Below, piece by piece: positions 1 to 52,277 of a stretch of DNA of 52,277 nucleotides. This DNA comes from Girardia tigrina (taxonomy: Eukaryota), in assembly GCA_001938485.1 (NCBI GenBank), contig MQRK01246661.1:1-52277 (forward strand). The letters are read 5' to 3'. Both the position numbers and the translations under genes were made by a program. Numbering within the stretch: the stretch's first letter is position 1; each line of letters opens with the position of its first letter. Under the pieces are notes generated by a model. That model was not told where the DNA came from and did no database searches. It worked only from the letters and a program-made list of their open reading frames with translations.

Positions 1-115
1 GGATATTAGATATTTTAATTATTTGAAATATTTAATATTTACTTTTTTGATAAATATTTTGTTTAAATATTATCAATTAAACATTGTTTTGAAAATAAAC
101 TTTTCGCGTGTTACA
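1..115 (+). mobile_element. 3' part of an LTR (solo or 3' LTR) of the family at 27821-31430
   Basis: Nearly identical to 28292-28406. Ends ...CGTGTTACA and is not followed by the AGCTATC PBS. Confidence 0.85.
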
Positions 116-581
116 AGAAGAAGGGACGGGGACCCCGGAATTCAAATATTATATTTAATATTTATATATAATATATTCAAATTTTGTATAAATAAATATA
201 TTATTTCTTACATTTTTCACGGACAGAGTAAGAGCAACAACTTGGAAAAACCGGATCACGTGCTCCTCATCTGCTCGAGATGCGGTCATCGTCGAAGGTG
301 GTTGACACCTCCTCGCCCGACTGGCGATCGTTGAAAGCGGCGACCGGATTTCTTTCGCTCGAATGGCGATCGTCAGAAGAAGGAAAACACGCTCCCCTGC
401 TACCAGATTATCGTTCGACACTCAGGTTGCCCCGAGAATCGGACGGGGGTAAAAAAGTTGCGCAAGGAAACCTTCTCGTTGTGTTGGGCCCGTTTTTATT
501 TGAATTGACGCTAATTGAACCTCCGCAGTCGAATAATATTAACAAATATCTCGTGATCTTCTTTATCTAAATCGATATTTT

Positions 582-12979: not shown

Positions 12980-13984
12980 GGTTATCATAAAGTAACTAGA
13001 GTTTTAAAACCACTTTAATATTTCGTAGAAATAGTGGAAAACACAAAACAAATTGAAAAANNNNNNNNNNNNNNNNNNNNNNNNNNNNNNNNNNNNNNNN
13101 NNNNNNNNNNNNNNNNNNNNNNNNNNNNNNNNNNNNNNNNNNNNNNNNNNNNNNNNNNNNNNNNNNNNNNNNNNNNNNNNNNNNNNNNNNNNNNNNNNNN
13201 NNNNNNNNNNNNNNNNNNNNNNNNNNNNNNNNNNNNNNNNNNNNNNNNNNNNNNNNNNNNNNNNNNNNNNNNNNNNNNNNNNNNNNNNNNNNNNNNNNNN
13301 NNNNNNNNNNNNNNNNNNNNNNNNNNNNNNNNNNNNNNNNNNNNNNNNNNNNNNNNNNNNNNNNNNNNNNNNNNNNNNNNNNNNNNNNNNNNNNNNNNNN
13401 NNNNNNNNNNNNNNNNNNNNNNNNNNNNNNNNNNNNNNNNNNNNNNNNNNNNNNNNNNNNNNNNNNNNNNNNNNNNNNNNNNNNNNNNNNNNNNNNNNNN
13501 NNNNNNNNNNNNNNNNNNNNNNNNNNNNNNNNNNNNNNNNNNNNNNNNNNNNNNNNNNNNNNNNNNNNNNNNNNNNNNNNNNNNNNNNNNNNNNNNNNNN
13601 NNNNNNNNNNNNNNNNNNNNNNNNNNNNNNNNNNNNNNNNNNNNNNNNNNNNNNNNNNNNNNNNNNNNNNNNNNNNNNNNNNNNNNNNNNNNNNNNNNNN
13701 NNNNNNNNNNNNNNNNNNNNNNNNNNNNNNNNNNNNNNNNNNNNNNNNNNNNNNNNNNNNNNNNNNNNNNNNNNNNNNNNNNNNNNNNNNNNNNNNNNNN
13801 NNNNNNNNNNNNNNNNNNNNNNNNNNNNNNNNNNNNNNNNNNNNNNNNNNNNNNNNNNNNNNNNNNNNNNNNNNNNNNNNNNNNNNNNNNNNNNNNNNNN
13901 NNNNNNNNNNNNNNNNNNNNNNNNNNNNNNNNNNNNNNNNNNNNNNNNNNNNNNNNNNNNNNNNNNNNNNNNNNNNNNNNNNNN

Positions 13985-17000: not shown

Positions 17001-20000
17001 ACTTCGATGTTCAGAAGATCTCCAAGGACAACAATGACGAGTGGTATCCATGGTGGGTGAGATAAAAATAATTTATTCCCCACGACTCAAAGTCCACCCT
17101 TCGACGCCGAGTGTCGCGGCCACGCAAGTGATTCCCCTGCTCTGTTATTAATTGATTTAATTACGCATACCATCAAATAAAATTGGAAGAAGAGTCAAAG
17201 GTTAAGATGATATTCTCAAGAAAGAACAAACATACTGTTTCAAAAGAATGCTTTGGGAATTGCGGCTGCCCAAGTGAATTTTCAGGAGTTAATGGTGAAA
17301 TTTTTGGGAAATTTGAATTTGAAAGAAGTATTTGTATATTTGGATGATATTTTTATTTTTGATAAACATGAAAAAGAATATCTTCAAGGAGTATTTAATG
17401 TATTTCAAAAAAATTAAAGAATCTGGTTCAATAATAAAAATGTAAAGTTCTTGAAGAAAAGACAAGCTTTTTAGGATATTTCATATGTAAAGCAGGTATT
17501 GAAACAGATAAAACAAAGATTAAACAAAAAAAAAGTTAAACAAAAAACTCGTCATACATTAAATTTTTAAGGAGATTTTTTTGACTTGACAAATTACTAC
17601 ATAAAATGTACAGCTTTTCAAAATCAAAAAACAATAATGTCTAAAACCCCGATTTCTAAATATTTTACCAAATATTTTATGCTTTATTCGGACGCAGGTT
17701 TTGATACAATATTAGTAGTGTTAACACTGAAAGACAAACATGGAAGAGAAAGATATAAAATGAATCATTATATGAAAAGCATAAAATGAATAAACATAAA
17801 CTTGGCTATTAAATTACAAGGAAATAACTTCTTGCATTTTGTTATTTTAAACAGAATTTTAAAAAAATTTTGTATAGAAAAATATTTTTGTTATGAACAT
17901 ATCAGGTGTCAATATATACTGGCCATAATAGACCAGTTCAGTAAATATATTAACTTGAATACAGTTGCTAGTAAAGAGGAAAAAATAATATCTTTCTATT
18001 GTACAGATGAATCTGAAAATTTTTACTAACAAAAGAAATTCAAGTAGACAGAGAAAAAATTCAATCGGCTTTGTTCAAAGAAACAGCTAAACAGTCCAAA
18101 ATTGAGATACTCTATTCGAGTTCCTATCATCCATAATACAAATGGAATCGTAGAAAGACAGTTTTGATCTATCAGAAAAGCTTTAAATATTAAAATGAAA
18201 GATAAAGATCATAAAGATATGGCAGATGTTTTATCAGAAATTTAGCTTATGTTGAATAATACTGTACAAGATACGACAGGTGTGTCACTAACCAAAATAG
18301 TATTTGGACGAAAATTTAGACATCGGTGGAAAAAAAATTAAGAAGATGACGAAGAAAACATAGAGACAAGAAGAAAATTTTAAGTAAAAGACGGAGTAAG
18401 GAAGGAAAAATTTTCAAGCGATGATGACTGTTGCATGGGTCTGCAAGAGTGGTGAAATAATCATGAAAAAAAGTTAAGAGTTATAGCTTGAAAATGTCAG
18501 AATTTTTAAAGTCAAATATATCAAAGGAAATGTGAGAAGTGTTTTAATTTTTTATGTTTTTATGTTTGAGTGTCATGTACTGATTTGAATTGTGTCTCTT
18601 ACTCTGATGGCTTCTTATCATAAACTATTTTAATTAAATTTATAGTTTAATATTTATATTTATTTTAAATTTAAAAAGCGTTGTAAAATTTCTAGTGATT
18701 TGAATAATTTATTTTTAATTTTTAAATGAATGAAATATTTTTAAAAATAATTAAAATGAATTTTAATTTTTAATTATGAAATTTACGAGACATTATTTTT
18801 AATATTCAAATGTCATTATGATTCAGATAATTCTAAATTATTATATTATCCTATTAGAGTGATGTTTTTGAGTGACATATTTTATACGGATAATCTTAAG
18901 GATGATCCGAATTGAATTGCTAATAAAATTTATAATCAGTGAGTGCGTTCTCTTAATAAAATCTTAGACCATTTTGAACTTTTTAATGAAATGATTACTA
19001 AAATTGCAGTACAATGTAAAATATTTGTGACAAAAATTAGTTTGAATTTAATGCTAAAAAGATTTGAATAATGTAATTGTTATTTAAATAATTTCAATAG
19101 TAACAAAACAGGAAATTTTCTCATTCATAACCGGAACTTCAAATAATATGTCTCATTCACTGGAAATTATTCATTTAAATTCTACTGTTTACCTGCATTT
19201 TGAAAGTACAATAATTTTTATTTTAAAGCTTAAAATAATACAATTAGTAAAAAATGAATTAATCAACATTAAAAGATATTTCGGTTTTCAATATAAATTA
19301 TTTTGTCTTTGTGACTTACTTTTTAGTCAAGAAAATGGATGGCATTGTCTTCTAAACAGTATGGACAAGACAACTGAGTAAATGTGACTTTTTGTTAAAT
19401 ATTTTATTTAAATTACTTAAAGAATACAAAGCTTGACACAAATTAAAAAATATAATAATATTCCGTATCAGAATATTTTTTTATTATAAATATATTATTG
19501 TTATGGTTATAATTATGGGAATAACATAAATAAAATTAAAGGATTATTATGAATAAATTATCGTATAAGTAATAAAAGCAATATCAGAGATCATGTTCAT
19601 TTTTTTAATTACAATAAAGACGAAATTTGAATTTAGTATTGTCGAAAAAATTTTAAATATAAATTTTTTAAATAAAAATTATTGTACTTCCAATACCGTC
19701 CAGGGATTTCAAAATATCTGAACTAAGAATTTTTAAAAAGTCTTTTCGTTTGATCTTGTNNNNNNNNNNNNNNNNNNNNNNNNNNNNNNNNNNNNNNNNN
19801 NNNNNNNNNCCCGCCGTTTTTTGAAAAATTAAAATTTTATTTTTAACAAAAAAGTTACTAGAAATTAATCACAAATATAATCTCCGCCATTGTTCACGAC
19901 TTCTTCCCAACGTACAACGAGTTTTTCAATGCCTCTTTTGTAGAAATCGCCCGGTCTTGACTCGAAGAATTCAGCCAACGAAACTTGCAGTTCTCCATCA

Positions 20001-23000
20001 TTGTTGAACGAAACACCACGCAAAGCGTTAGAAAGTGAACGAAAAAGATGAAAATCAGATGGAGCAAAGTTAGGTGAATACGGAGGGTGCGGTAATACTT
20101 CCCAACCAAGCGTTTGAATGGCTTCTGTTGTCATTCTGGCAATATGAGGACGTGCATTGTCATGTTGCAAAATAATGCCATGTTGTCGATCCGGATGTTT
20201 TTGTCTTATAGCGGCGTTGAGTCTATGCAGCTGTTGAACATAAAGTTCCGATTTCACTGTTTGGTTTCGAGCAAGCAATTCATAATGAATAATCCCTTCC
20301 CAACCCCACCAAACACATAGCATTGTCTTTCGTGAATGAAGATCCTGTTTTGCTCGCGGAGTCGATTGTACTTCTCGGCTACACCATTCTTTGCGCTGTT
20401 TCATGTTGACGTACAGGCACCATTTTTCATCACCCGTTACAATTCGATAAAGAAATTGTTACTTATGAACGTGAGTAGAGCGATGACGGGCAAGCAAACT
20501 CGCCGAAATTGTGTATCGCTGGTTTTTGTTGTTTTCGGTCAAAAGATGTGGGACCAAAGCTCCCATTTGTTGAACTTTCCCCATTGATTTCAGGACGTTG
20601 ACGACAGTTTTTTGATCACAATCCATTTGTTCCGCCAATTCTCGAGTGGTTTGACGCGCGTCTTCATGCAAAAGTTTGTTCAAACGCTCTTCANNNNNNN
20701 NNNNNNNNNNNNNNNNNNNNNNNNNNNNNNNNNNNNNNNNNNNCTGTTTCATGTTGACGTACAGGCACCATTTTTCATCACCCGTTACAATTCGATAAAG
20801 AAATTGTTACTTATGAACGTGAGTAGAGCGATGACGGGCAAGCAAACTCGCCGAAATTGTGTGTCGCTGGTTTTTGTTGTTTTCGGTCAAAAGATGTGGG
20901 ACCAAAGCTCCCATTTGTTGAACTTTCCCCATTGATTTCAGGACGTTGACGACAGTTTTTTTATCACAATCCATTTGTTCCGCCAATTCTCGAGTGGTTT
21001 GACGCGCGTCTTCATGCAAAAGTTTGTTCAAACGCTCTTCATCGAATCCATTTGGTCGTCCTGAACGAGGTGCATCCTTGAGGTCAAAATTGCCAATTTT
21101 AAATTTTGCGAACCAATCACGAGCGGTTCTATTAGCTATAGCACCTTCTCCGTATACAGCACAAAGCTCTCGGGCAGCGTCTGCGGCTTTGGCGCCTCGA
21201 TTATACGCAAACAATAGATGGTGTTGGAAATGCTTATTTTTGTCGACTTGACACTCCATTTCAATGGTCTAAAAATCGACAAAAATTAATGTGAATAAAA
21301 AAACAAAATACACCATTTTTTAGAGCAAAACAATAGCATTCAAATAACATATATTATTACATCAAAAAATTTGATTTAAATATTAAATTGATTAAAAATT
21401 CAAAAAACGGCGGGAACTTATTCCTCAACCTAATATTAATATTCAACTAAATTATTGTTGCAATGAAATGAAATTTCAGTTACATCTAGGGTTAATAAAT
21501 GTTTATTGTCTTTATTCGATGACCAAAGAGAGCACAATATTGTATTTTTTCAAAAAGATTCAGACGAGGTGGACGATTATGATATTCGACTTCAACTCAT
21601 AATTTACGTTTTGAAAGACCGAGTCATTATCTATCAGATTTTAAACCGAACGATCTGTCTGAGAAACTGTGATCCGTATTTGACACCGATTCTCAGGCAT
21701 TTCTAAATCATAAAAGACAATCCAATTTGCTATAATCTTTATCGTCTTATCGATGAAGTCATTACAGAACTGAATTTTACACAAGGATAGTATGTATTCC
21801 GATCCGACATTAAACATTCTTGAATCGTTTAATCTCACGGATATATTAAAAAAATCAATGATCCAAATAATATCCAGAACGCGTCAGAAATTCAAAAAAA
21901 TTAAAATAAACTAAACAACATAATTGAAAGTTTATAAAAATCAAACAAATAATGATCGATTTTCCGAAGTAATGCAAGTCAATGAACAATATTAAGAAAA
22001 CAAATGTTACTTTTTATATTGTTATTAGTATAACAATTTTGATAGTCCTCTGGACGATCTTTGGCAACACTTTTTTACTTTTGCATCCTAATTGATTAAT
22101 GACTTAAATTTTAATATCTGAGTAAATGGAGATTGAATACTCATTTAAAATATTTACTAAAAATTTTATGGGTTAAAAATTAAAATAAATAATAAATATT
22201 TTAAAAATATTAATTCATTTTATTTATTTAAATTGTAAATAATAGTAATCGACTTATTTAAAATTTTAAAATAATTTTAAAATTAAAAATAAATTTAACC
22301 ATTACACATTTTAAATAACAAGAACAAATATATTAATCAGTCATCTAGGTAGGAGAAACACAATACCCAAATCAACATACAACATTCAAACACAAAACAT
22401 CAAACATTCCAAATATTCCACAAACAATTTTGTTGAAAACTCGGAAATTCAATTAATTAGGAATCCAGTCAGTGAAAACGATAATTCGGAATCGAAGAAG
22501 AAAGTCAACAAAATCAAAAGCATTCGATAATGAAAGTCAAGTAATCGATGAGAATAAATTTCAGGAAAAAATCAATGCAAATTTTGCATCGATTTTAAGT
22601 ACTTTTTGATTGGAGTCAATAGGTTATTATAATTGGTTATTACAATAATAAGTTGTGTAGGAAAGACAATTGATTGATGTGACCTTTAACAGAAATTATT
22701 TTCATGAAACAAATAAAATTTAACAAAAAAAGTTTTAGACAATATCGAATTTGTTATTTAATTTAAATATAAAGATTTGGCGTTTTTAAATTTTGTATAA
22801 TGATAATAACAATTTGAAACTAACTTCAGTTACTTCCGGTTGTTACAAAATCTTTGGGGCTAAAGCGAAAGTTTGTAAGAATCGATTGTTAACAATAACC
22901 GATAGTCACTCGACGGTAACTCGACAAGTCAAAGTTTTTTAATTTAAGCAAAAACCAGTACTTTTAAAAGGGGAGTTTTTAAGAATTATTTGATAAGTTT

Positions 23001-28200: not shown

Positions 28201-31200
28201 GCGCGTCTTAATTTATTACATTGATTGATTTAAACAATCTCAGGAGTTTTTAATTATTCAGGATCCTTTGATATATTATGATATTGATGTTGGATATTAG
28301 ATATTTTGATTATTTAAAATATTTAATATATGCTTTTTTGATAAATATTTTGTTTAAATATTATCAATTAAACAGTGTTTTGAAAATAAACTTTTCACGT
28401 GTTACAAGCTATCCGGGAATAATGAAGGATATAAAAATCGTTTTGGAGCTTTTGGAAAAATTCGATGGAAGCGTTAGCTTCGAGATCTGGCAGAAGAAAT
28501 TTGAAATGGTCATGAAAATCCAGAAGATTACCGATCCAGACCTGTATCTCCCTTTTTTACTATCGGGGGTTGCACTGAACATCTACATGGAATCGGACGA
28601 AAAGACGCAAAACAGCTGCGATCGGTTCTTCAAGATACTAAACAATTCGTTCGACCTGACTAGACGGTCCGCGTACAGTCAATTGATAAACTTACAGTAC
28701 CACGAGGGCGAGACTATCGATGAATATGCGTCTCAGGTGAAGATGCGATCTAATAAGGTCGACGATCTAACAAAAGCCGCCTTCATTACTGGACTGCCTT
28801 TCGAGCTGCAGCTGGATTTGGAACGGGTCGGCGACCAACCCTTGACCGAAATGATCGAGTATAGCCGTAGGTATTTGGGGATTAAAAAGGGTTTATTACA
28901 TGGTCCAATGACATTAATACAACACAGAAACAACAACAAAGATCCGGAGGTCAGGGAAAACTCGATAAACCCAGAGCAAATCTTCACAAAGGACCCTATG
29001 TTTATCGTGAGGGAGACACCGAATCGGAGGAAAGGAAGCATCATAAGGGTTCTCAGTGGCAATCGAATAAACATACAATATGCTAACAATGTCAGAAACC
29101 GGGTCATATAGTAAAATATTGTCAGTCGGGAAACGAACAGGGGAGTTTGTAGGCGCCGGCTTCACAGATCCAGGCGTTACTGACGATGATCGTCACCGTA
29201 AATGACAGGTCAGCCATAGCGTTGATTGATTCGGGTTGTTCGAAAATGGTCGTTATAAAAGGGTTAGTTAGTGATTGTATGTTGTTTTCTGACAGGGAAA
29301 GTATGGTTTTAGCGAATGGAAAGGGTGTTAGAGTGGGTTCGGGTAAAGTACGGCTGACTATAAATGGTAGGATTCGTAGGGTGAAATGTTCGGTCATGGA
29401 ACATTTTCCGTATGGTCGAGGGATCTTAATAGGTATGGATGTCATAGGTTAATTTGGCAGCGTGAGAATTAATAAGGGTGTTATTGAGTTCGGTGAAGAA
29501 GAAATTAAAGGGACAAATAGTAGCTTGAGTTTTACCGCATCGGATTAGCTTCTTGTTAGCATAAAAAAGCATAATTTTGAGATTAAGTGTAGGGAAAATT
29601 TGTTGATTAAATGGAATTGTAAAAGTGAGGCTCCTAGTTATCTTCCAAATCGACAGTCAGTTTTAAAAGACAATAAATTAAAAGATGTTGCAAAGTTGAA
29701 AATTTTAGACAGTTGGGTAGAAAAGGATTATCTAATCGAGTACAATGAGAAAGAAATGGGTAAATTGATAGGATCCATACCGATATTTGGAATATTGCAG
29801 GCTAATAAGTCCAAAATAAGACCCATTTTTGATTTAAGAAAATTAAACAATTACGTGGATGTTTACAGTGGTTCAGCGGATGTATGTTTAGAAAAGCTCT
29901 GCGATTCGCGACGTAGGGGTTCGACTTTTTCAATGCTTGATTTGTCAGAGACTTACATGCAGATTCATGTTCATAAGGAGATGTGGCGTTACCAATCTTG
30001 TATCATTAATAACAAGAAATATGCTTTAACTAGGATGGGTTTTGGTTTAAACATTGCACCAACTATAATGACNNNNNNNNNNNNNNNNNNNNNNNNNNNN
30101 NNNNNNNNNNNNNNNNNNNNNNGTCAGGTGGATTCTGAACTCTGACATCAGGATGCGTGAAAATACCGACTCTTATATTGATGATATTTATGTAAATAAA
30201 AGTTTCATTTCTGTTGAAGAAGTAGAAAAAGTGTTCAATAACTTCGGTCTCAAAGGTAAGAAACCGGAAAATCTGTCACAAGCCAACGAAGTTCGAGTTT
30301 TAGGAATGAAAGTCTTTAAGGACCAACATGTAGTGAGATGGAAGAGGGACAATCAGGTAAGGGATGAGCTGGATGTGGAATCAATTTCACGTCGTGAGTT
30401 ATATTCGTTATGCGGACAATTAGTTGGAACACATCAGGTAGCTAGTTGGCTACGTCCGTCATATTCATACCTTAAACGACTTAGTGAGGGAAGGTGGGAT
30501 GAAAAGATAGACGAAGAATTATTTGAGAAGATTAAATGGGTTGTAAAGACAGTGAGGGAGATTGATCCTTGCTGAAGTTTATGGGCCATTGATGACTGCA
30601 GGGAAGGTATTATATGGTGTGACGCAAGTTCAATAGACATTGGTTCAGCGTTAGAAGTCAAAGGGAACATAATCGAGGACGAATCATGGTTGAGAAAAAC
30701 TTATGATTCTAGGCATATTAATGTAGCAGAACTAGAAGCAGTTGTAAAGGGTTTAAACTTATGAAATGGGGTTTAAGGAGCGTGATAGTCAAATCGAATA
30801 ATAAGTCATTAGTTTTGTAGATAACCTCAACAACCTCAGATCGCGAAAAATTTAATACCAACACTTCATCTGAGCTTTGAATAAAACGACGACTGTCGAT
30901 GATCAAGGAGCTGTGTCAGGAGTATGAGATCGAGTTGAAGATCGAGTTTGTTAATAGCGAAGATAACAAGGCGGACGAGTTGACAAGAATCCCAAAACAA
31001 TTAAAAANAAGCAATTGTTTTTTAACGGTTACGGACGATCTACTCAACCTGCAGCAACTTCATGATAAGTGTCATTTAGGCCCAAACAGAATGCGATATC
31101 TATGTGCGAAGCAAGGAATAAGTGTATCAAACGTGAATATCAAGGATCTGATTTCATGATGTGAAAAATGTCAATCCATCGATCCGGCATCCGTAAAATG

Positions 31201-34200
31201 GAAAACCGGTAGGCTGAGCATCAATGAAAACTGGACAATACTTGCTGCGGATGTTACAAAGTACAATGAACAAAAATTTTTAAGTGTAATCAATTGAGGT
31301 CCTTCTCGCTTTGCGATATGGAAATTAATTAAGACTGAAGACGTCAGAATTCTCAAGTTTGTTCTGTGAACGCGGGTCTCCCAAGGAACTAATTATCGAT
31401 AATTATACCACACACAAGATCTCTGTAACACAAAGTTTTACTAGTTAATGATCCTACACGCATGATTTTTTCGGAATTTCAAGCTAAATTTAAATTTATA
31501 TTTCTTTTTATTTTTATTTATTTCTATGTGAAATGGCTAAGATTACGTTAGATGTTTCTGAAAACTGACAAAGATTATCGATAGACGTCACAAAGTTTCA
31601 CAATGACAAATACATAACAGTAGTGGATACTGGCTCATTGAGAATGGCAATATTACAAAAAATGCAAAACGAAATCTGTGAAAAGACACGTACTTTCTTA
31701 AATGGTTGTTAAAATTTTATTAAATTGAATAATTTAGAAAAATTATTAATTTAATTCTGCGAAATCTCAAAATTAAATTACAATAGTACTAAAGGTAAGA
31801 TACTCTTAGGGTATTGTTCTATAAATAAAAGCAAAAAACATAAATTTTATAACCTTGCTTCAAGAGGAACAATTTCACCGTCATCTGTTACTTGTTCCAA
31901 CTCAAACTTCTGAGCAGCATCTAATGATAAAGATATAATATCAGCAGCACCACTGGATCCCTAATTTTATAATAATAATTATTTTATGAAATTTAATTAG
32001 AACCTGACAGAGAACCACGGGGCATTTGTTTTCAACAATCGAATGACAAATTTGACTTAAAGTTAATACATCTCCTCCGACGACTAATCCACATATTGGA
32101 ACTCTAGTTTCAATAGAAGTTTCATTATTTAATGTTTCGGACTTCCAAAAAGAAATTGCGTGTTCAAATCTGGATCTAAACTGTACATCATTTTCCCTAG
32201 GGTCATTAGACGGAGGAACATCAAAAAGGAGAAAATGTGAATGATTAGTATCAAGGGATTTTTCTTTTTTATTTTCAATGACAATTCCTTCTTCATTATC
32301 TTCGGGTTCTTCTTCTGACTGATAAATTGCTGGATAAGTTCCCTAATAAATATAATTTTCATTACTGTCTATTATATATAAAACCAGTAGTTTCCAATCT
32401 ATGAAAACCACCTCTTTAAGAGGTGCATAATTGTTGACAAAATATTATTTTTTGTATTCACACAATACAAATCACATCGAAGTCAAAAAAGATAAATTGG
32501 AGTATATATTTAAGTTTATTTATACATAATAGGCTGTACTGACCACTTTTATAAAAAATTTCATTAAAAACTTTTTATAAAAAAACTTTGATAATAAAAA
32601 AACAATAAACGATTAAATTAAATTATAAAAATTGATTTAATTTAATTAAAAAAACATAATTTAAATCAATATTAGTAATTATAAATATCCATATATATTT
32701 AAAATATACTATATTAATTATTTACAAAAAAAATCAGTTGTTTTAACGGACGATTTTTATATACTTTTTTGAAATCGAATAAATTTTTAAAACGGGTGTC
32801 AATCTTTATCTTTAATAAAACTTTTATTTAATTTTTTTCTATAAAAATTATACTCCGGAATTATCCGTCGAGTTTTTATTCACCCTCAACATATGCTATA
32901 AAAGTTTTAACCAGTACAATAAATTACAATATCAAGTAAATATTTATGAAATGTAATATTTTTTGAAAGAGAGGCATAAATACGGAAAAGTTAAAAACTC
33001 TTTATTAAACTAATCCGTTAAAAAATCCAAAGTTTTTTGGAATGTTAATTGTATTATTTATTAATTTACGTAGCACTAGCATAATTTTACTACGGAAATC
33101 CTATTAGATTTCCATAATTTTCAAAATTCAACTGTCAGAAACAAACAATAGACTAAATGAAAAGTATTTTTAAACACATTAACAGTATAATTATTCAACA
33201 TATTTATTTTAAATATTCTTGTTTGTTAATAAATGTATTGTAACTAATCCGATTAAAAATCCAAAGTTTTTTGGAATGTTAATTGCATTATTTATTAATT
33301 TAAGTAGCACTAGCATAATTTTACTACGGAAATCCTATTAGATTTCCATAATTCCCAAAATTCAACTGTCAGAAACAAACAATAGACTAAATGAAAAATA
33401 TTTTAAAACACATTAATAGATTAATTATTTAAAAGATGTATTTTAAATATTCTTAATAACTCTGAAAATAGTTTAAATCAAATATAATTAAAAACATTAT
33501 ATTTTACCTGATATAAAGCATTTTCTAGAACTTCGTTTTTGGCTACTTTATGCCATGGTGCTACTCCTATTGCAATCATTTTATTTCCCCCATATGCATC
33601 AGTGTAATCTCTAACTGCTTCCCCTGCCAGCTTCATTATTCCCATATTCAAACCTTCTGTTACAATCCAGCAGCCTTAAATGTTTAATAATATCATATAC
33701 AAATTAAATAAAATTTCATTTTATTTTAAATTTTTTTATTTCATAAAAATACTTGACATATTTAATTATTACTACAGTTCCAAAAAATTCTTTAAAGATA
33801 CCTATAGTGTTAAAAACAGAAAAATCACTAAATTTTGTGTCAAACTCTGAATTCTATATAAATTCTATATTTGAAATTTAAAATAACGATAATTATTTTC
33901 GGATTTTGATAAGTAATTTTGATCGTAATTATGAAAGGACAATTATTGAAGCACTGTTAATAAAGTTTTAAAACATAGTTTAAACGTGAAAAGTGATTTG
34001 TACTATAATATTAGAGTATTTTGACGTAATATGGTCATCTTACTATATCAACAATCATGTCCGGAAATTTCTACGAAAACATTTAAACGAAGGGAATTTA
34101 TACGAAGGAAATTTATACGAATGGAAAATTATACGAATGAATATTTATACGGATGAAAATTTATACGAACGGAAATTTATACAAATAAAAATTTTTGAAT

Positions 34201-34428: not shown

Positions 34429-34478
34429 NNNNNNNNNNNNNNNNNNNNNNNNNNNNNNNNNNNNNNNNNNNNNNNNNN

Positions 34479-37500: not shown

Positions 37501-40500
37501 ACTGAAAATGATTTTTTCTGTGGTTTACACTCTCCAACAAACTCTAAGGACTTTGTGATAAATCAGAAGAAGCCATTTCATCAGAAAAAGGTATATGTTT
37601 TACAAGTAGTGCTTCAGTTCATTTCTTCTTTTCATGGCTATCACATTTTTATGTGATGCTCTTTGTTATGATAAAAATGATTACGAATTTAAAATCGTGC
37701 TTCATGACTTTTTATCGACTCATTATTCAACATTTATTATTCAGTTCTTTGGAAGATTGTAAATTAGTAATTTTCCCTTAACATCTGTGAACATTGTTTT
37801 GATTGTTACTTTATAGAAGAGGAATAATTTTAAGGTCAAATTTAATATTATAAGCAATCGCCTAATTATTTGTCTGTAAAGGTGTACATCTACAATCTAT
37901 ATGTGTGGAACCCATCTGTTAGAATCGAGTTCTAGAGGAAGGATTTGGGCGAACACGGTCCCATGAAGGTCCTTGTAATTAATTGGATCATCTAATTTGT
38001 TTGAATAATATAGTATTTTGTAAATCGAAAATATCATCTTATTTTACAAGCTATCGTGGCAATGAAAGCAATCAGTAATTTGAAGAAATTTGATGGTGGG
38101 GAGGACGTCGAACGTTGGATCGACAGATTCGAGTTTGCCATCGAGGTAGACGGGCTAATGGGAAAAGAAGTCTCATGCTTGGTCATGCAGTTGGACGGGC
38201 CGGCATACAACACTTGGAAGGGCTTATCGCTGGATCAACAGAGAAACACCAAGGAAATCAAAAGTGAGTTGCGCCGAGTGTTTGGTTTGTGGAAATTTGA
38301 CGCATAATATTTGAATCCCAAACAATTCTGTTATTAAATTTTTTATAATTTTACTCATCTTTGAATTTTATTCAAGTAACGTTATTAATTGAAATAATTT
38401 TTAATCTTTGTTCAAATAGAAAATTGACATTACATTAAAATTTCCTCAGAAACGTATTTAATTTAATTAATTGTCCTAAAACTACAAGTAATTTTAACGG
38501 GTATGGAACTGTCGGCCATTAATGCATTGAGATGCAAATTTCTTGTAGCTCGTAATAAAGTGTGTTTCTTTTTTTGGGACAATGTTTCTTGAAGAAAGTC
38601 CAAGGAAGTGGAACTCAGTTTTATAATCATGAAAATATTAGTTTGCTGCTTAGATTTATTTATACTTAGATTTATTTAGACAGTTCGAGTCAGGAGTTTT
38701 CAAGACTATGATCGATAAGTTAGGCGCCAAGCACGCGCACACGTCTGTGTACCACCCCCAGGCCAATGGGGCAATAGAGTGGTTCCACCGCACCTTTAAA
38801 CTTCCATCAAGATCTTCGCTGACAAGAACGCTCGTTGGGTGGACGCAGTTCCCTATGTTCTTTTGGGGTGGCGCAATACTCCTAACACCACCACAGACGC
38901 TTCACCAGCCCAAATTCTCTACGGAACATCAATCCGTTTTCTTTCAGAACTCACCGATTGTAACATCACCCCGTCCGACACCGACATGGCCGCCGCAAGA
39001 AAGCAGTTCGAAAACCTGCCCAAGGACAAGTTTTACCAGATGCCTAACCACGCAAAAACTTTCCTCCTAGAGAGTCAGTACACCACTAATTTCCTCTGGC
39101 TCAAAGACCACACATCTAGTAGGTTGAAACTACCCTACACCGGACCTAACAAAATCATTGAACTTTACCCCAGCAACGCGAAAATTCTCAAAGACGGCAA
39201 AACTATCACAGTCCACCTCAACAACACCAAGCCCGTCTTCGTTATGGACGACACCCCCATCCCGGGCAGCGATAACATGACCAGTTTATGACCGTCACCG
39301 ATAAACCGTTCATTACCACTACTCCAACTCCGTGCGAAGGAGCCAGCGGAAACACCGCAGCTAATACCAAGACACCGCACGCCGAAGACAACAGTAACCA
39401 AACATCATCTGATGACATTGTCGTTACTAACCAACGCAACTCTCGCATTAGACCTGCCAGATTCACCAGTTGGGCACCAATGCAAACCCCAACGGGCATC
39501 AACAGATTCCGCAGGGTCGAACAATAACCTTCTGCGTTTCCTTTCAGGCGTGTCTCGTGTCTTTCCTTCGGGGGAGTTGTGTTGTGTGCCACCACATTCT
39601 TGTTATTTTTATTGTTGTTTGGAGAGAAATTTATTTGTGTCTATTGTCTTTATAATTAATGTTTATCGCTTTCTCTCTCTCTATTTCTGTCATTATCTCT
39701 ATTACTGTCTCTATCTAATTGTCCTTTGTTGCAGTGTAAATACAGTTCACTCACAATGTGGAATGTGCNGTTTGAATTTGGTTTTTTTTATTAATTTCAG
39801 AAACGAATTTTTTCTTTGATTTGTAAATCGTAACCGATATCGGCAATTGTTCATTTTTTTCTGTTTAATTATTTTTTGAGTTGTCTGTGAATAAAAATAA
39901 TGCTAAAATAGCAATAGAAATTTAATGTCAGAAATTACAAAAAAATATTATCGTGGATAATCAAAAAACAATTACAAAAAAATTATAATTATGAACGTGG
40001 TTAGTGAATGTGTGAATTTGTTTTATTAAACTAAATATATATTTTCGATTTGAGTTTCTTATGAATTTTGTGTTTATAAATGAGTGATTTCCTTAAATGG
40101 GCGTTTGATCATTTCTGCAGAGGAATTAAATCATCACAACACGCAATGACGAAACAGTTTTCTCGATTCTATAATTGTTTGGGAGCCACGTACGAAATCA
40201 GCCGATTTTTCGAATCTCGTGTCCGTAGACCTGACGAATATACGACATTGGTGTTTCATTAATTAGTATTTAAACTAAGGATGTCGTGGATTGGTTTCAA
40301 AGGAATTATATACATGAAAGAATTAGAAGACATAAGCATGATGACACATGGCTTCGAAAACCACCTTTATTTTTAGAAACAGCATGGTCGATATAATATT
40401 CTTTTCAAAATGACATTTCACGTACTTAGAATGTCTTAGAAGCTTGATATCGAAGACGGGAATGCATTATTTAACGAGCATATGTTGGATTTTACAGAAT

Positions 40501-51522: not shown

Positions 51523-52277
51523 TAGACATGTACCGGTTTCACTTTTTCAAAACCGACCGTTTCCAGTACCGGTTTTGAAAAATAAAAAATTATCAAAAAA
51601 GAAAAACCAACATTGAAACGAAATAAAATTTTTATTTTGTATTTTTAACAGAAATACTAACTTCATCAATTAGATGAAAATTAAATTTCAAAAGAATTAA
51701 TCTCTCTGTATTCTCCGGTAATAGCCTTGATTTTTGGTCGTCCAATGTTTTTCCTGCAATGCTAAAAACTCTTTCAGAAGGAACACTTGTGAGCGGAGAC
51801 ACACGATAGGTACGAGCGATCTGTGATAGTCTTGGGAAACGATGATTATTGAAGCCCCACCAGTGAAGTAGATTTTCTTGTTTTGAAATAAGTCCTTCAG
51901 ATAAATAGATGTCCAATTCTGTTTTCAACGCTGATGCTGGAGAAAAAGACAACTTTGTCTGAGACAGCGATAAAATCTCGTCAAGACTTGACCAGGGGCT
52001 GAGATCACAATTTTGAGAAATGTTCATTAAAGTTTTTTCAGTTTCTAAATGCTCGACGATTGTAGTGATTTCATTTATATACCAACATGTAAAAGCTAGA
52101 AGGTTATCTTTAATTTGTGCAGATACAAACTCAGAAATGCAGCGATGTTTAAAACTGGGATTCAAAAGAGTGGCGATTGCTCAACATGGGTGAATCTCCA
52201 TGTTTCTCAACCGTTTTATGAGAGATTTCAGCAACTGTTCCTTCATTGTTTTTAATTCTGAATCAACTTCGGGCTTT
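51523..52277 (-). mobile_element. hAT (Ac/ZBED1-like) transposon 3' end with dimerisation domain
   Basis: ELDIYL, LHWW, FPRLSQIA, TSVPSERVFSIAG, RLLPEN. Terminus TAGACATGTACCGG with subterminal ACCG repeats. Confidence 0.9.

Follow-up and report, generated by a model that had tools for sequence, protein, structure and literature searches.

How does an LTR retrotransposon start reverse transcription when the bases next to its 5' LTR match the beginning of a tRNA instead of its tail? This question is raised by a compact, broken element in the 52,277-nt stretch of Girardia tigrina DNA that we analysed in full (the window; contig MQRK01246661.1, assembly GCA_001938485.1). The initial annotation proposed that the LTR is followed without a spacer, and without a TGG, by a site complementary to nt 2-12 of tRNA-Lys(UUU). 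From this it inferred that minus-strand synthesis starts from a ~12-nt 5' tRNA fragment cut in the D-stem, perhaps by the element's own RNase H as in Tf1. We found that the observation is real and stronger than first described. The interpretation is only partly supported, since the sequence bears out the site but says nothing on its use.

To test the layout, we first re-read the sequence. An AT-rich repeat ends in TGTTACA at position 28406, AGCTATCCGGG follows at 28407-28417, and an ATG at 28422-28424 opens a gag-like frame. The putative primer-binding site spans 12 nt (28407-28418, plus strand) and is separated from the ATG by 3 nt. The repeat recurs at the first bases of the window (1-117 against 28292-28408, 95% identical). 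This second LTR copy (1-115, plus strand) starts at LTR position 4 because the window begins there, is identical to the relative's LTR in 104 of 108 aligned columns, and is a 3' or solo LTR of another insertion. The initial annotation took this copy to fix the LTR boundary. However, the two copies also share the next two bases, AG, before the second copy runs into unrelated purine-rich DNA from 118 onward, so the repeat alone places the boundary at either 28406 or 28408. The canonical CA end favours 28406.

Next, we set out to characterize the element through its relatives. A search with the gag frame found two relatives, represented by ten contigs (L001-L010) that were read and compared as they stand, without a consensus and without rotating or joining contigs. 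L001-L009 are 92% identical to window positions 28288-31412, and the four longest (L001-L004) are the same 3808-nt contig, circularly permuted, from four assemblies at about 21x coverage. L010 is distant, with a gag that is 66% identical and DNA that is about 67% identical. In L001-L009 all frames are open. Gag is 246 aa and carries Retrotrans_gag plus one CCHC knuckle, and pol is about 968 aa. Pfam hits on the relatives' open frames were, in order, Retrotrans_gag, zf-CCHC, gag-asp_proteas, RVT_1, DUF7047, RVT_3/RNase_H, Integrase_H2C2 and rve. The last two are weak but are supported by PDB integrase hits. This is the gag-PR-RT-RH-IN order of an LTR retrotransposon.

These contigs also define the LTR. 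In L001-L009 pol runs straight into the repeat, its stop codon lies within the first 13 bases of the repeat, and a purine tract (GGTGGGAG) inside pol codons abuts the first base of the repeat, as expected upstream of a 3' LTR. In the window and in L010 the same base is preceded by unrelated flank. The LTR is therefore only 119 nt (28288-28406, plus strand, TGTTGG...TGTTACA), which the initial annotation had not seen. An AATAAA at 28385-28390, 16 nt before the end, is conserved in all lineages. The LTR of L010 is 138 nt, and a full element would be about 3.9 kb. We saw no molecule with direct repeats at both ends of gag-pol: the window copy has only its 5' LTR, and the relatives' contigs are circular permutations with one LTR, so the TG...CA repeat is present but its terminal arrangement is neither confirmed nor contradicted. 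No insertion with both ends was in hand, and target-site duplications were not scored.

The window copy is dead and 3'-truncated, which had also escaped the initial annotation. Compared with the frames of the relative, gag (28422-29162, plus strand) has one frameshifting indel and at most two stop codons, one of which may be the natural stop. Pol (29204-31412, plus strand; PR, RT, DUF7047, RNase H and the start of integrase) has two frameshifting indels, seven stop codons and one 50-N assembly gap, and its own fragmented frames hit RVT_1 and DUF7047. The positions of the breaks were not recorded. The last roughly 216 codons of pol and the 3' LTR are missing, and the element ends at 31412. A short extra integrase-like stretch lies beyond this end (31570-31673, plus strand). 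A tblastn search of the window with the relatives' gag and pol found only this one element. It lies antisense in an intron of a TRPM-like host gene, next to exons of that gene (31850-33675, minus strand) with a SLOG/LSDAT_euk domain.

We first took the element for BEL/Pao (Belpaoviridae) on the basis of DUF7047. This was withdrawn, as no Pao signature (Peptidase_A17 and allied domains) was found in the open frames even at E <= 5, nor among the precomputed domains of 120 relatives. The ICTV profile of that family also does not fit: it gives an LTR of 0.2-1.2 kb, a genome of 4.2-10 kb and an 18-nt site for the 3' end of tRNA-Arg or tRNA-Gly, against a 119-nt LTR, a 3808-nt unit with one LTR and a 12-nt site pairing with a tRNA 5' end. 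The gag, protease and integrase hits are those usual in Ty3/gypsy-like elements, while the RNase H hits the cellular-type models, and we assign no superfamily. A literature search on DUF7047 (PF23088) found nothing. The lineage is large: 409 proteins had E <= 1e-5 among the 8000 candidates scored, with pol mostly 900-1000 aa on contigs of 3.6-4.4 kb. The named hosts are Trichuris muris and Petrolisthes manimaculis.

We then compared the site between copies. A lack of conservation had been named in advance as grounds for rejecting the proposal. In the window copy 11 of 12 bases match, pairing with tRNA nt 2-12, and the last base differs. In L002 (1300-1311, 3 nt before the gag ATG) and L010 (158-169, 1 nt before the gag ATG) the match is 12/12 and reaches tRNA nt 1, as it does throughout L001-L009. 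This 12-mer is the exact reverse complement of nt 1-12 of tRNA Lys_TTT as printed in PMC12217144, and it also matches the zebrafish 5' fragment of Lys-TTT in PMC4688932. The complementarity has sharp edges, ending at tRNA nt 1 on one side, while on the other tRNA nt 13 would face the final A of the LTR as a mismatch. Between L010 and L001, the LTR without its last 7 bases is identical in 75 of 131 columns (57%), whereas the last 7 LTR bases plus the 12-nt site are 19/19 identical (0.57^19 = 2.5e-5) and the next 40 columns are 24/40. The 11-mer and its complement are unique in the window, and we estimate the chance of a flush 12/12 match to one of about 50 tRNA 5' ends to be of the order of 3e-6. 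Only three lineages plus one fragment were compared, without a family-wide survey of post-LTR sites. The relatives' proteins were also searched for peptides that would betray a translated site, and only P0001 had one.

A better partner for the site, either a tRNA 3' end or the transcript's own 5' end, had likewise been set out beforehand as evidence against the proposal. No TGG lies within 37 nt of the LTR end, so a site for the 3' CCA end of a tRNA is absent from this position. The first TGG, 38 nt downstream, lies inside conserved gag codons and is not conserved as DNA in L010. Pairing of the site with the tRNA 12-mer gives -23.5 kcal/mol, against -6.5 kcal/mol for the best pairing with its own LTR, which equals the mean for shuffled 12-mers (-6.3 kcal/mol). 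The whole 3808-nt unit has no other match to the complement at 3 or fewer mismatches, and the best imperfect duplex (-14.1 kcal/mol, with an internal loop) lies far away in coding sequence. No conserved local structure encloses the site (consensus fold -6.5 kcal/mol, covariation term +0.56), and no conserved hairpin like the fungal GalEa site was found. As to whether a host tRNA has this 5' end, a further point raised in advance, the window holds no tRNA gene and no Rfam family. The 5' end is confirmed only for human and zebrafish tRNA-Lys(UUU), from the published sequences, and the host's own tRNAs were not examined. Contacts between the body of the tRNA and the element's RNA were not assessed either.

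A scan of the window for the shared layout pattern returned one other match, a fragment of a second, remote family. At 38046-38064 (plus strand) the sequence reads ACA (with the 12-mer, 38046-38060), a 12-mer (38049-38060), A and ATG. The frame that follows (38062-38304, plus strand) is a gag N-terminal fragment, 27% identical to family-1 gag over the same residues. The 12-mer differs from the first site at two positions, both opposite tRNA nt 4-5 in the acceptor stem, and is unchanged opposite nt 8-12, a stretch shared by many tRNAs. This fits a different tRNA partner. However, the complement of this site occurs in no paper searched, its tRNA is unassigned, and the fragment may simply be decayed. 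We count it as weak support.

On the minus strand at 1395-2435, gag-like ORFs with three zinc knuckles belong to another retroelement, and about 250 nt upstream on that strand (2675-2695) lies a TGG-type primer-site-like run, itself preceded by AGCTAT. A GC-rich integrase C-terminal fragment of yet another LTR element (38708-39560, plus strand) has a weak rve_3 hit. A Mos1/mariner-type transposase (19865-21259, minus strand) contains a 298-nt direct duplication (20396-20693 and 20744-21041, 99% identical) astride a 50-N gap, which looks like an assembly artefact. An ORF with a hAT dimerisation domain lies at 51632-52165 (minus strand), and a 213-nt AT-rich unit is tandemly duplicated at 33008-33454 (plus strand, 93% identical). 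A 924-N gap (13061-13984) is flanked by (AT)n runs, and a second (AT)n run flanks the 50-N gap at 34429-34478.

Taken together, we favour, with moderate confidence, the explanation that the 12 bases after the 5' LTR are the minus-strand primer-binding site and that they anneal to the first 12 nucleotides of a host tRNA, tRNA-Lys(UUU) for this family. In this view annealing unwinds the acceptor stem and the 5' strand of the D-stem, and a cut between tRNA nt 12 and 13 leaves a 3'-OH facing the last LTR base, from which reverse transcriptase copies the short U5-R. The resulting minus-strand strong-stop DNA would probably be under 60 nt, given the size of the LTR and the position of the AATAAA. 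Plus-strand strong-stop synthesis would later copy the 12 RNA bases and run off at the tRNA's 5' end, recreating the site for the second jump, which would explain why the site is exactly as long as the distance from the cut to nt 1. What our data demonstrate is the position, the complementarity, the conservation and the absence of a 3'-end site and of self-complementarity; annealing in vivo, use of the site for priming, the cut and the enzyme that makes it are inferred by analogy with Tf1 and copia, without functional data of any kind. The cut could be made by the element's RNase H or by a host nuclease. Cuts in the D-loop and D-stem that give short 5' tRNA fragments are known (PMC11962134), and primers released by a cut are known for Tf1/Tj1 (PMC4600332) and for half-tRNA elements (PMC6317226). 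However, a 12-nt primer needs a precise cut for which no enzyme is known in this lineage.

Among the alternatives, the one that survives best, although we consider it unlikely, is that the conserved block serves another purpose, such as integrase recognition of the LTR tip, packaging, dimerisation or the start-codon context, with a coincidental tRNA match and priming by something not yet recognised. The site lies 1-3 nt from the gag ATG and next to the LTR tip, where constraint is expected, and the second family's site matches no printed tRNA. Against this stand the low chance of an exact 12/12 match that starts at tRNA nt 1 and ends at the LTR base, the lack of another candidate primer site between the LTR and gag, and the lack of a conserved hairpin. 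Somewhat less likely still, the primer may be a ready-made host small RNA whose 3' end happens to be these 12 bases, either a 5' tRNA fragment trimmed by host nucleases or a transcript of a tRNA-Lys-derived repeat, so that the element would do no cutting itself. The same sequence evidence applies, short 5' fragments cut in the D-loop or D-stem exist, and a 30-nt 5' fragment of Lys-TTT is recorded in zebrafish (PMC4688932). However, the complementarity stops exactly at nt 12, the described 5' fragment classes are longer and would carry unpaired 3' ends, and many such fragments do not end in a 3'-OH. Tf1-type self-priming is very unlikely: the missing TGG, the short flush site and the Ty3/gypsy-like lineage would suit it, but it is contradicted by the absence of any complement of the site at 3 or fewer mismatches in the LTR and the whole unit, in line with the initial annotation. 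Equally improbable is a misplaced boundary or a repeat that is not an LTR, since despite the single LTR per insertion and the shared AG, the start is fixed by host flank in the window and L010 against pol in L001-L009, the end by flank at 116 onward against the site at 28407, and the TG...CA termini, the abutting purine run and the conserved AATAAA agree.

The closest known systems differ in the RNA or in the part of it that is paired. In the self-primed Ty3/gypsy elements Tf1/Tf2 of S. pombe and Tj1 of S. japonicus, a short site of about 11-12 nt without TGG also lies directly after the LTR, pairs with the very first nucleotides of an RNA and requires a cut just after the paired stretch (PMC4600332); the role of the element's RNase H is established from Levin's work. 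There the RNA is the element's own transcript, with its complement in the 5' LTR; primer release by RNase H was not assayed here. In half-tRNA ('hemivirus'-type) priming by copia, Ty5, Tca2/Tca5, Osser and Bianca, the primer is also a 5'-derived piece of a cleaved tRNA (39 nt in copia) and the site lacks TGG. Those sites pair with the anticodon-stem region of tRNA-iMet, tRNA-Ile or tRNA-Arg, and the elements are Ty1/copia, whereas here the pairing is with nt 1-12, the cut would fall in the D-stem and integrase lies after RNase H. Canonical priming in Ty3/gypsy, BEL/Pao and retroviruses also uses a host tRNA, commonly a lysine tRNA, at a site abutting U5, but through the opposite end of the tRNA, with a TGG and about 18 nt rather than 12. 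The Skipper polypyrimidine tract and the fungal GalEa hairpin are conserved non-TGG sequences at the primer-site position with no known mechanism, but neither is complementary to a tRNA, and our site has no palindrome or pyrimidine run. The papers we read list tRNA 3' ends, half-tRNA sites (Met, Ile) and internal tRNA regions, self-priming, the polypyrimidine tract and the hairpin. None describes a site for the 5'-terminal bases of a tRNA, and a search for sites complementary to a 5' end gave only Tj1 self-priming and unrelated cases, although most subscription journals and Repbase notes fell outside the search and a prior description is not excluded.

A broader and more speculative reading, which we regard as possible but unlikely, is that a widespread lineage of very compact (about 3.9 kb) animal LTR retrotransposons, with more than 400 pol relatives and named hosts including a nematode and a crab, starts reverse transcription from the 5'-terminal 12 nucleotides of host tRNAs cut in the D-stem, with different families using different tRNAs. 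This would be a further mode of priming beside the tRNA 3' end, the half-tRNA and self-priming, and one that current annotation pipelines cannot see.

How reverse transcription is primed is a defining trait of retroelement lineages, and only a few modes are known. The family lies at the small end for autonomous LTR elements, with a 119-nt LTR, a pol that ends inside the LTR and 1-3 nt between the site and the gag ATG. Pipelines that test only the 3' 12-18 nt of tRNAs, such as the method in PMC13524379, where 361 of 1512 elements had no site found, would class such elements as lacking a primer site. If it is the primer site, it points to an undescribed way of starting reverse transcription: a site that pairs with tRNA nt 1-12 would mean that the tRNA must be cut in the D-stem or that a very short 5' fragment is recruited, and it would tie 5' tRNA fragments to retroelement replication and not only to silencing.
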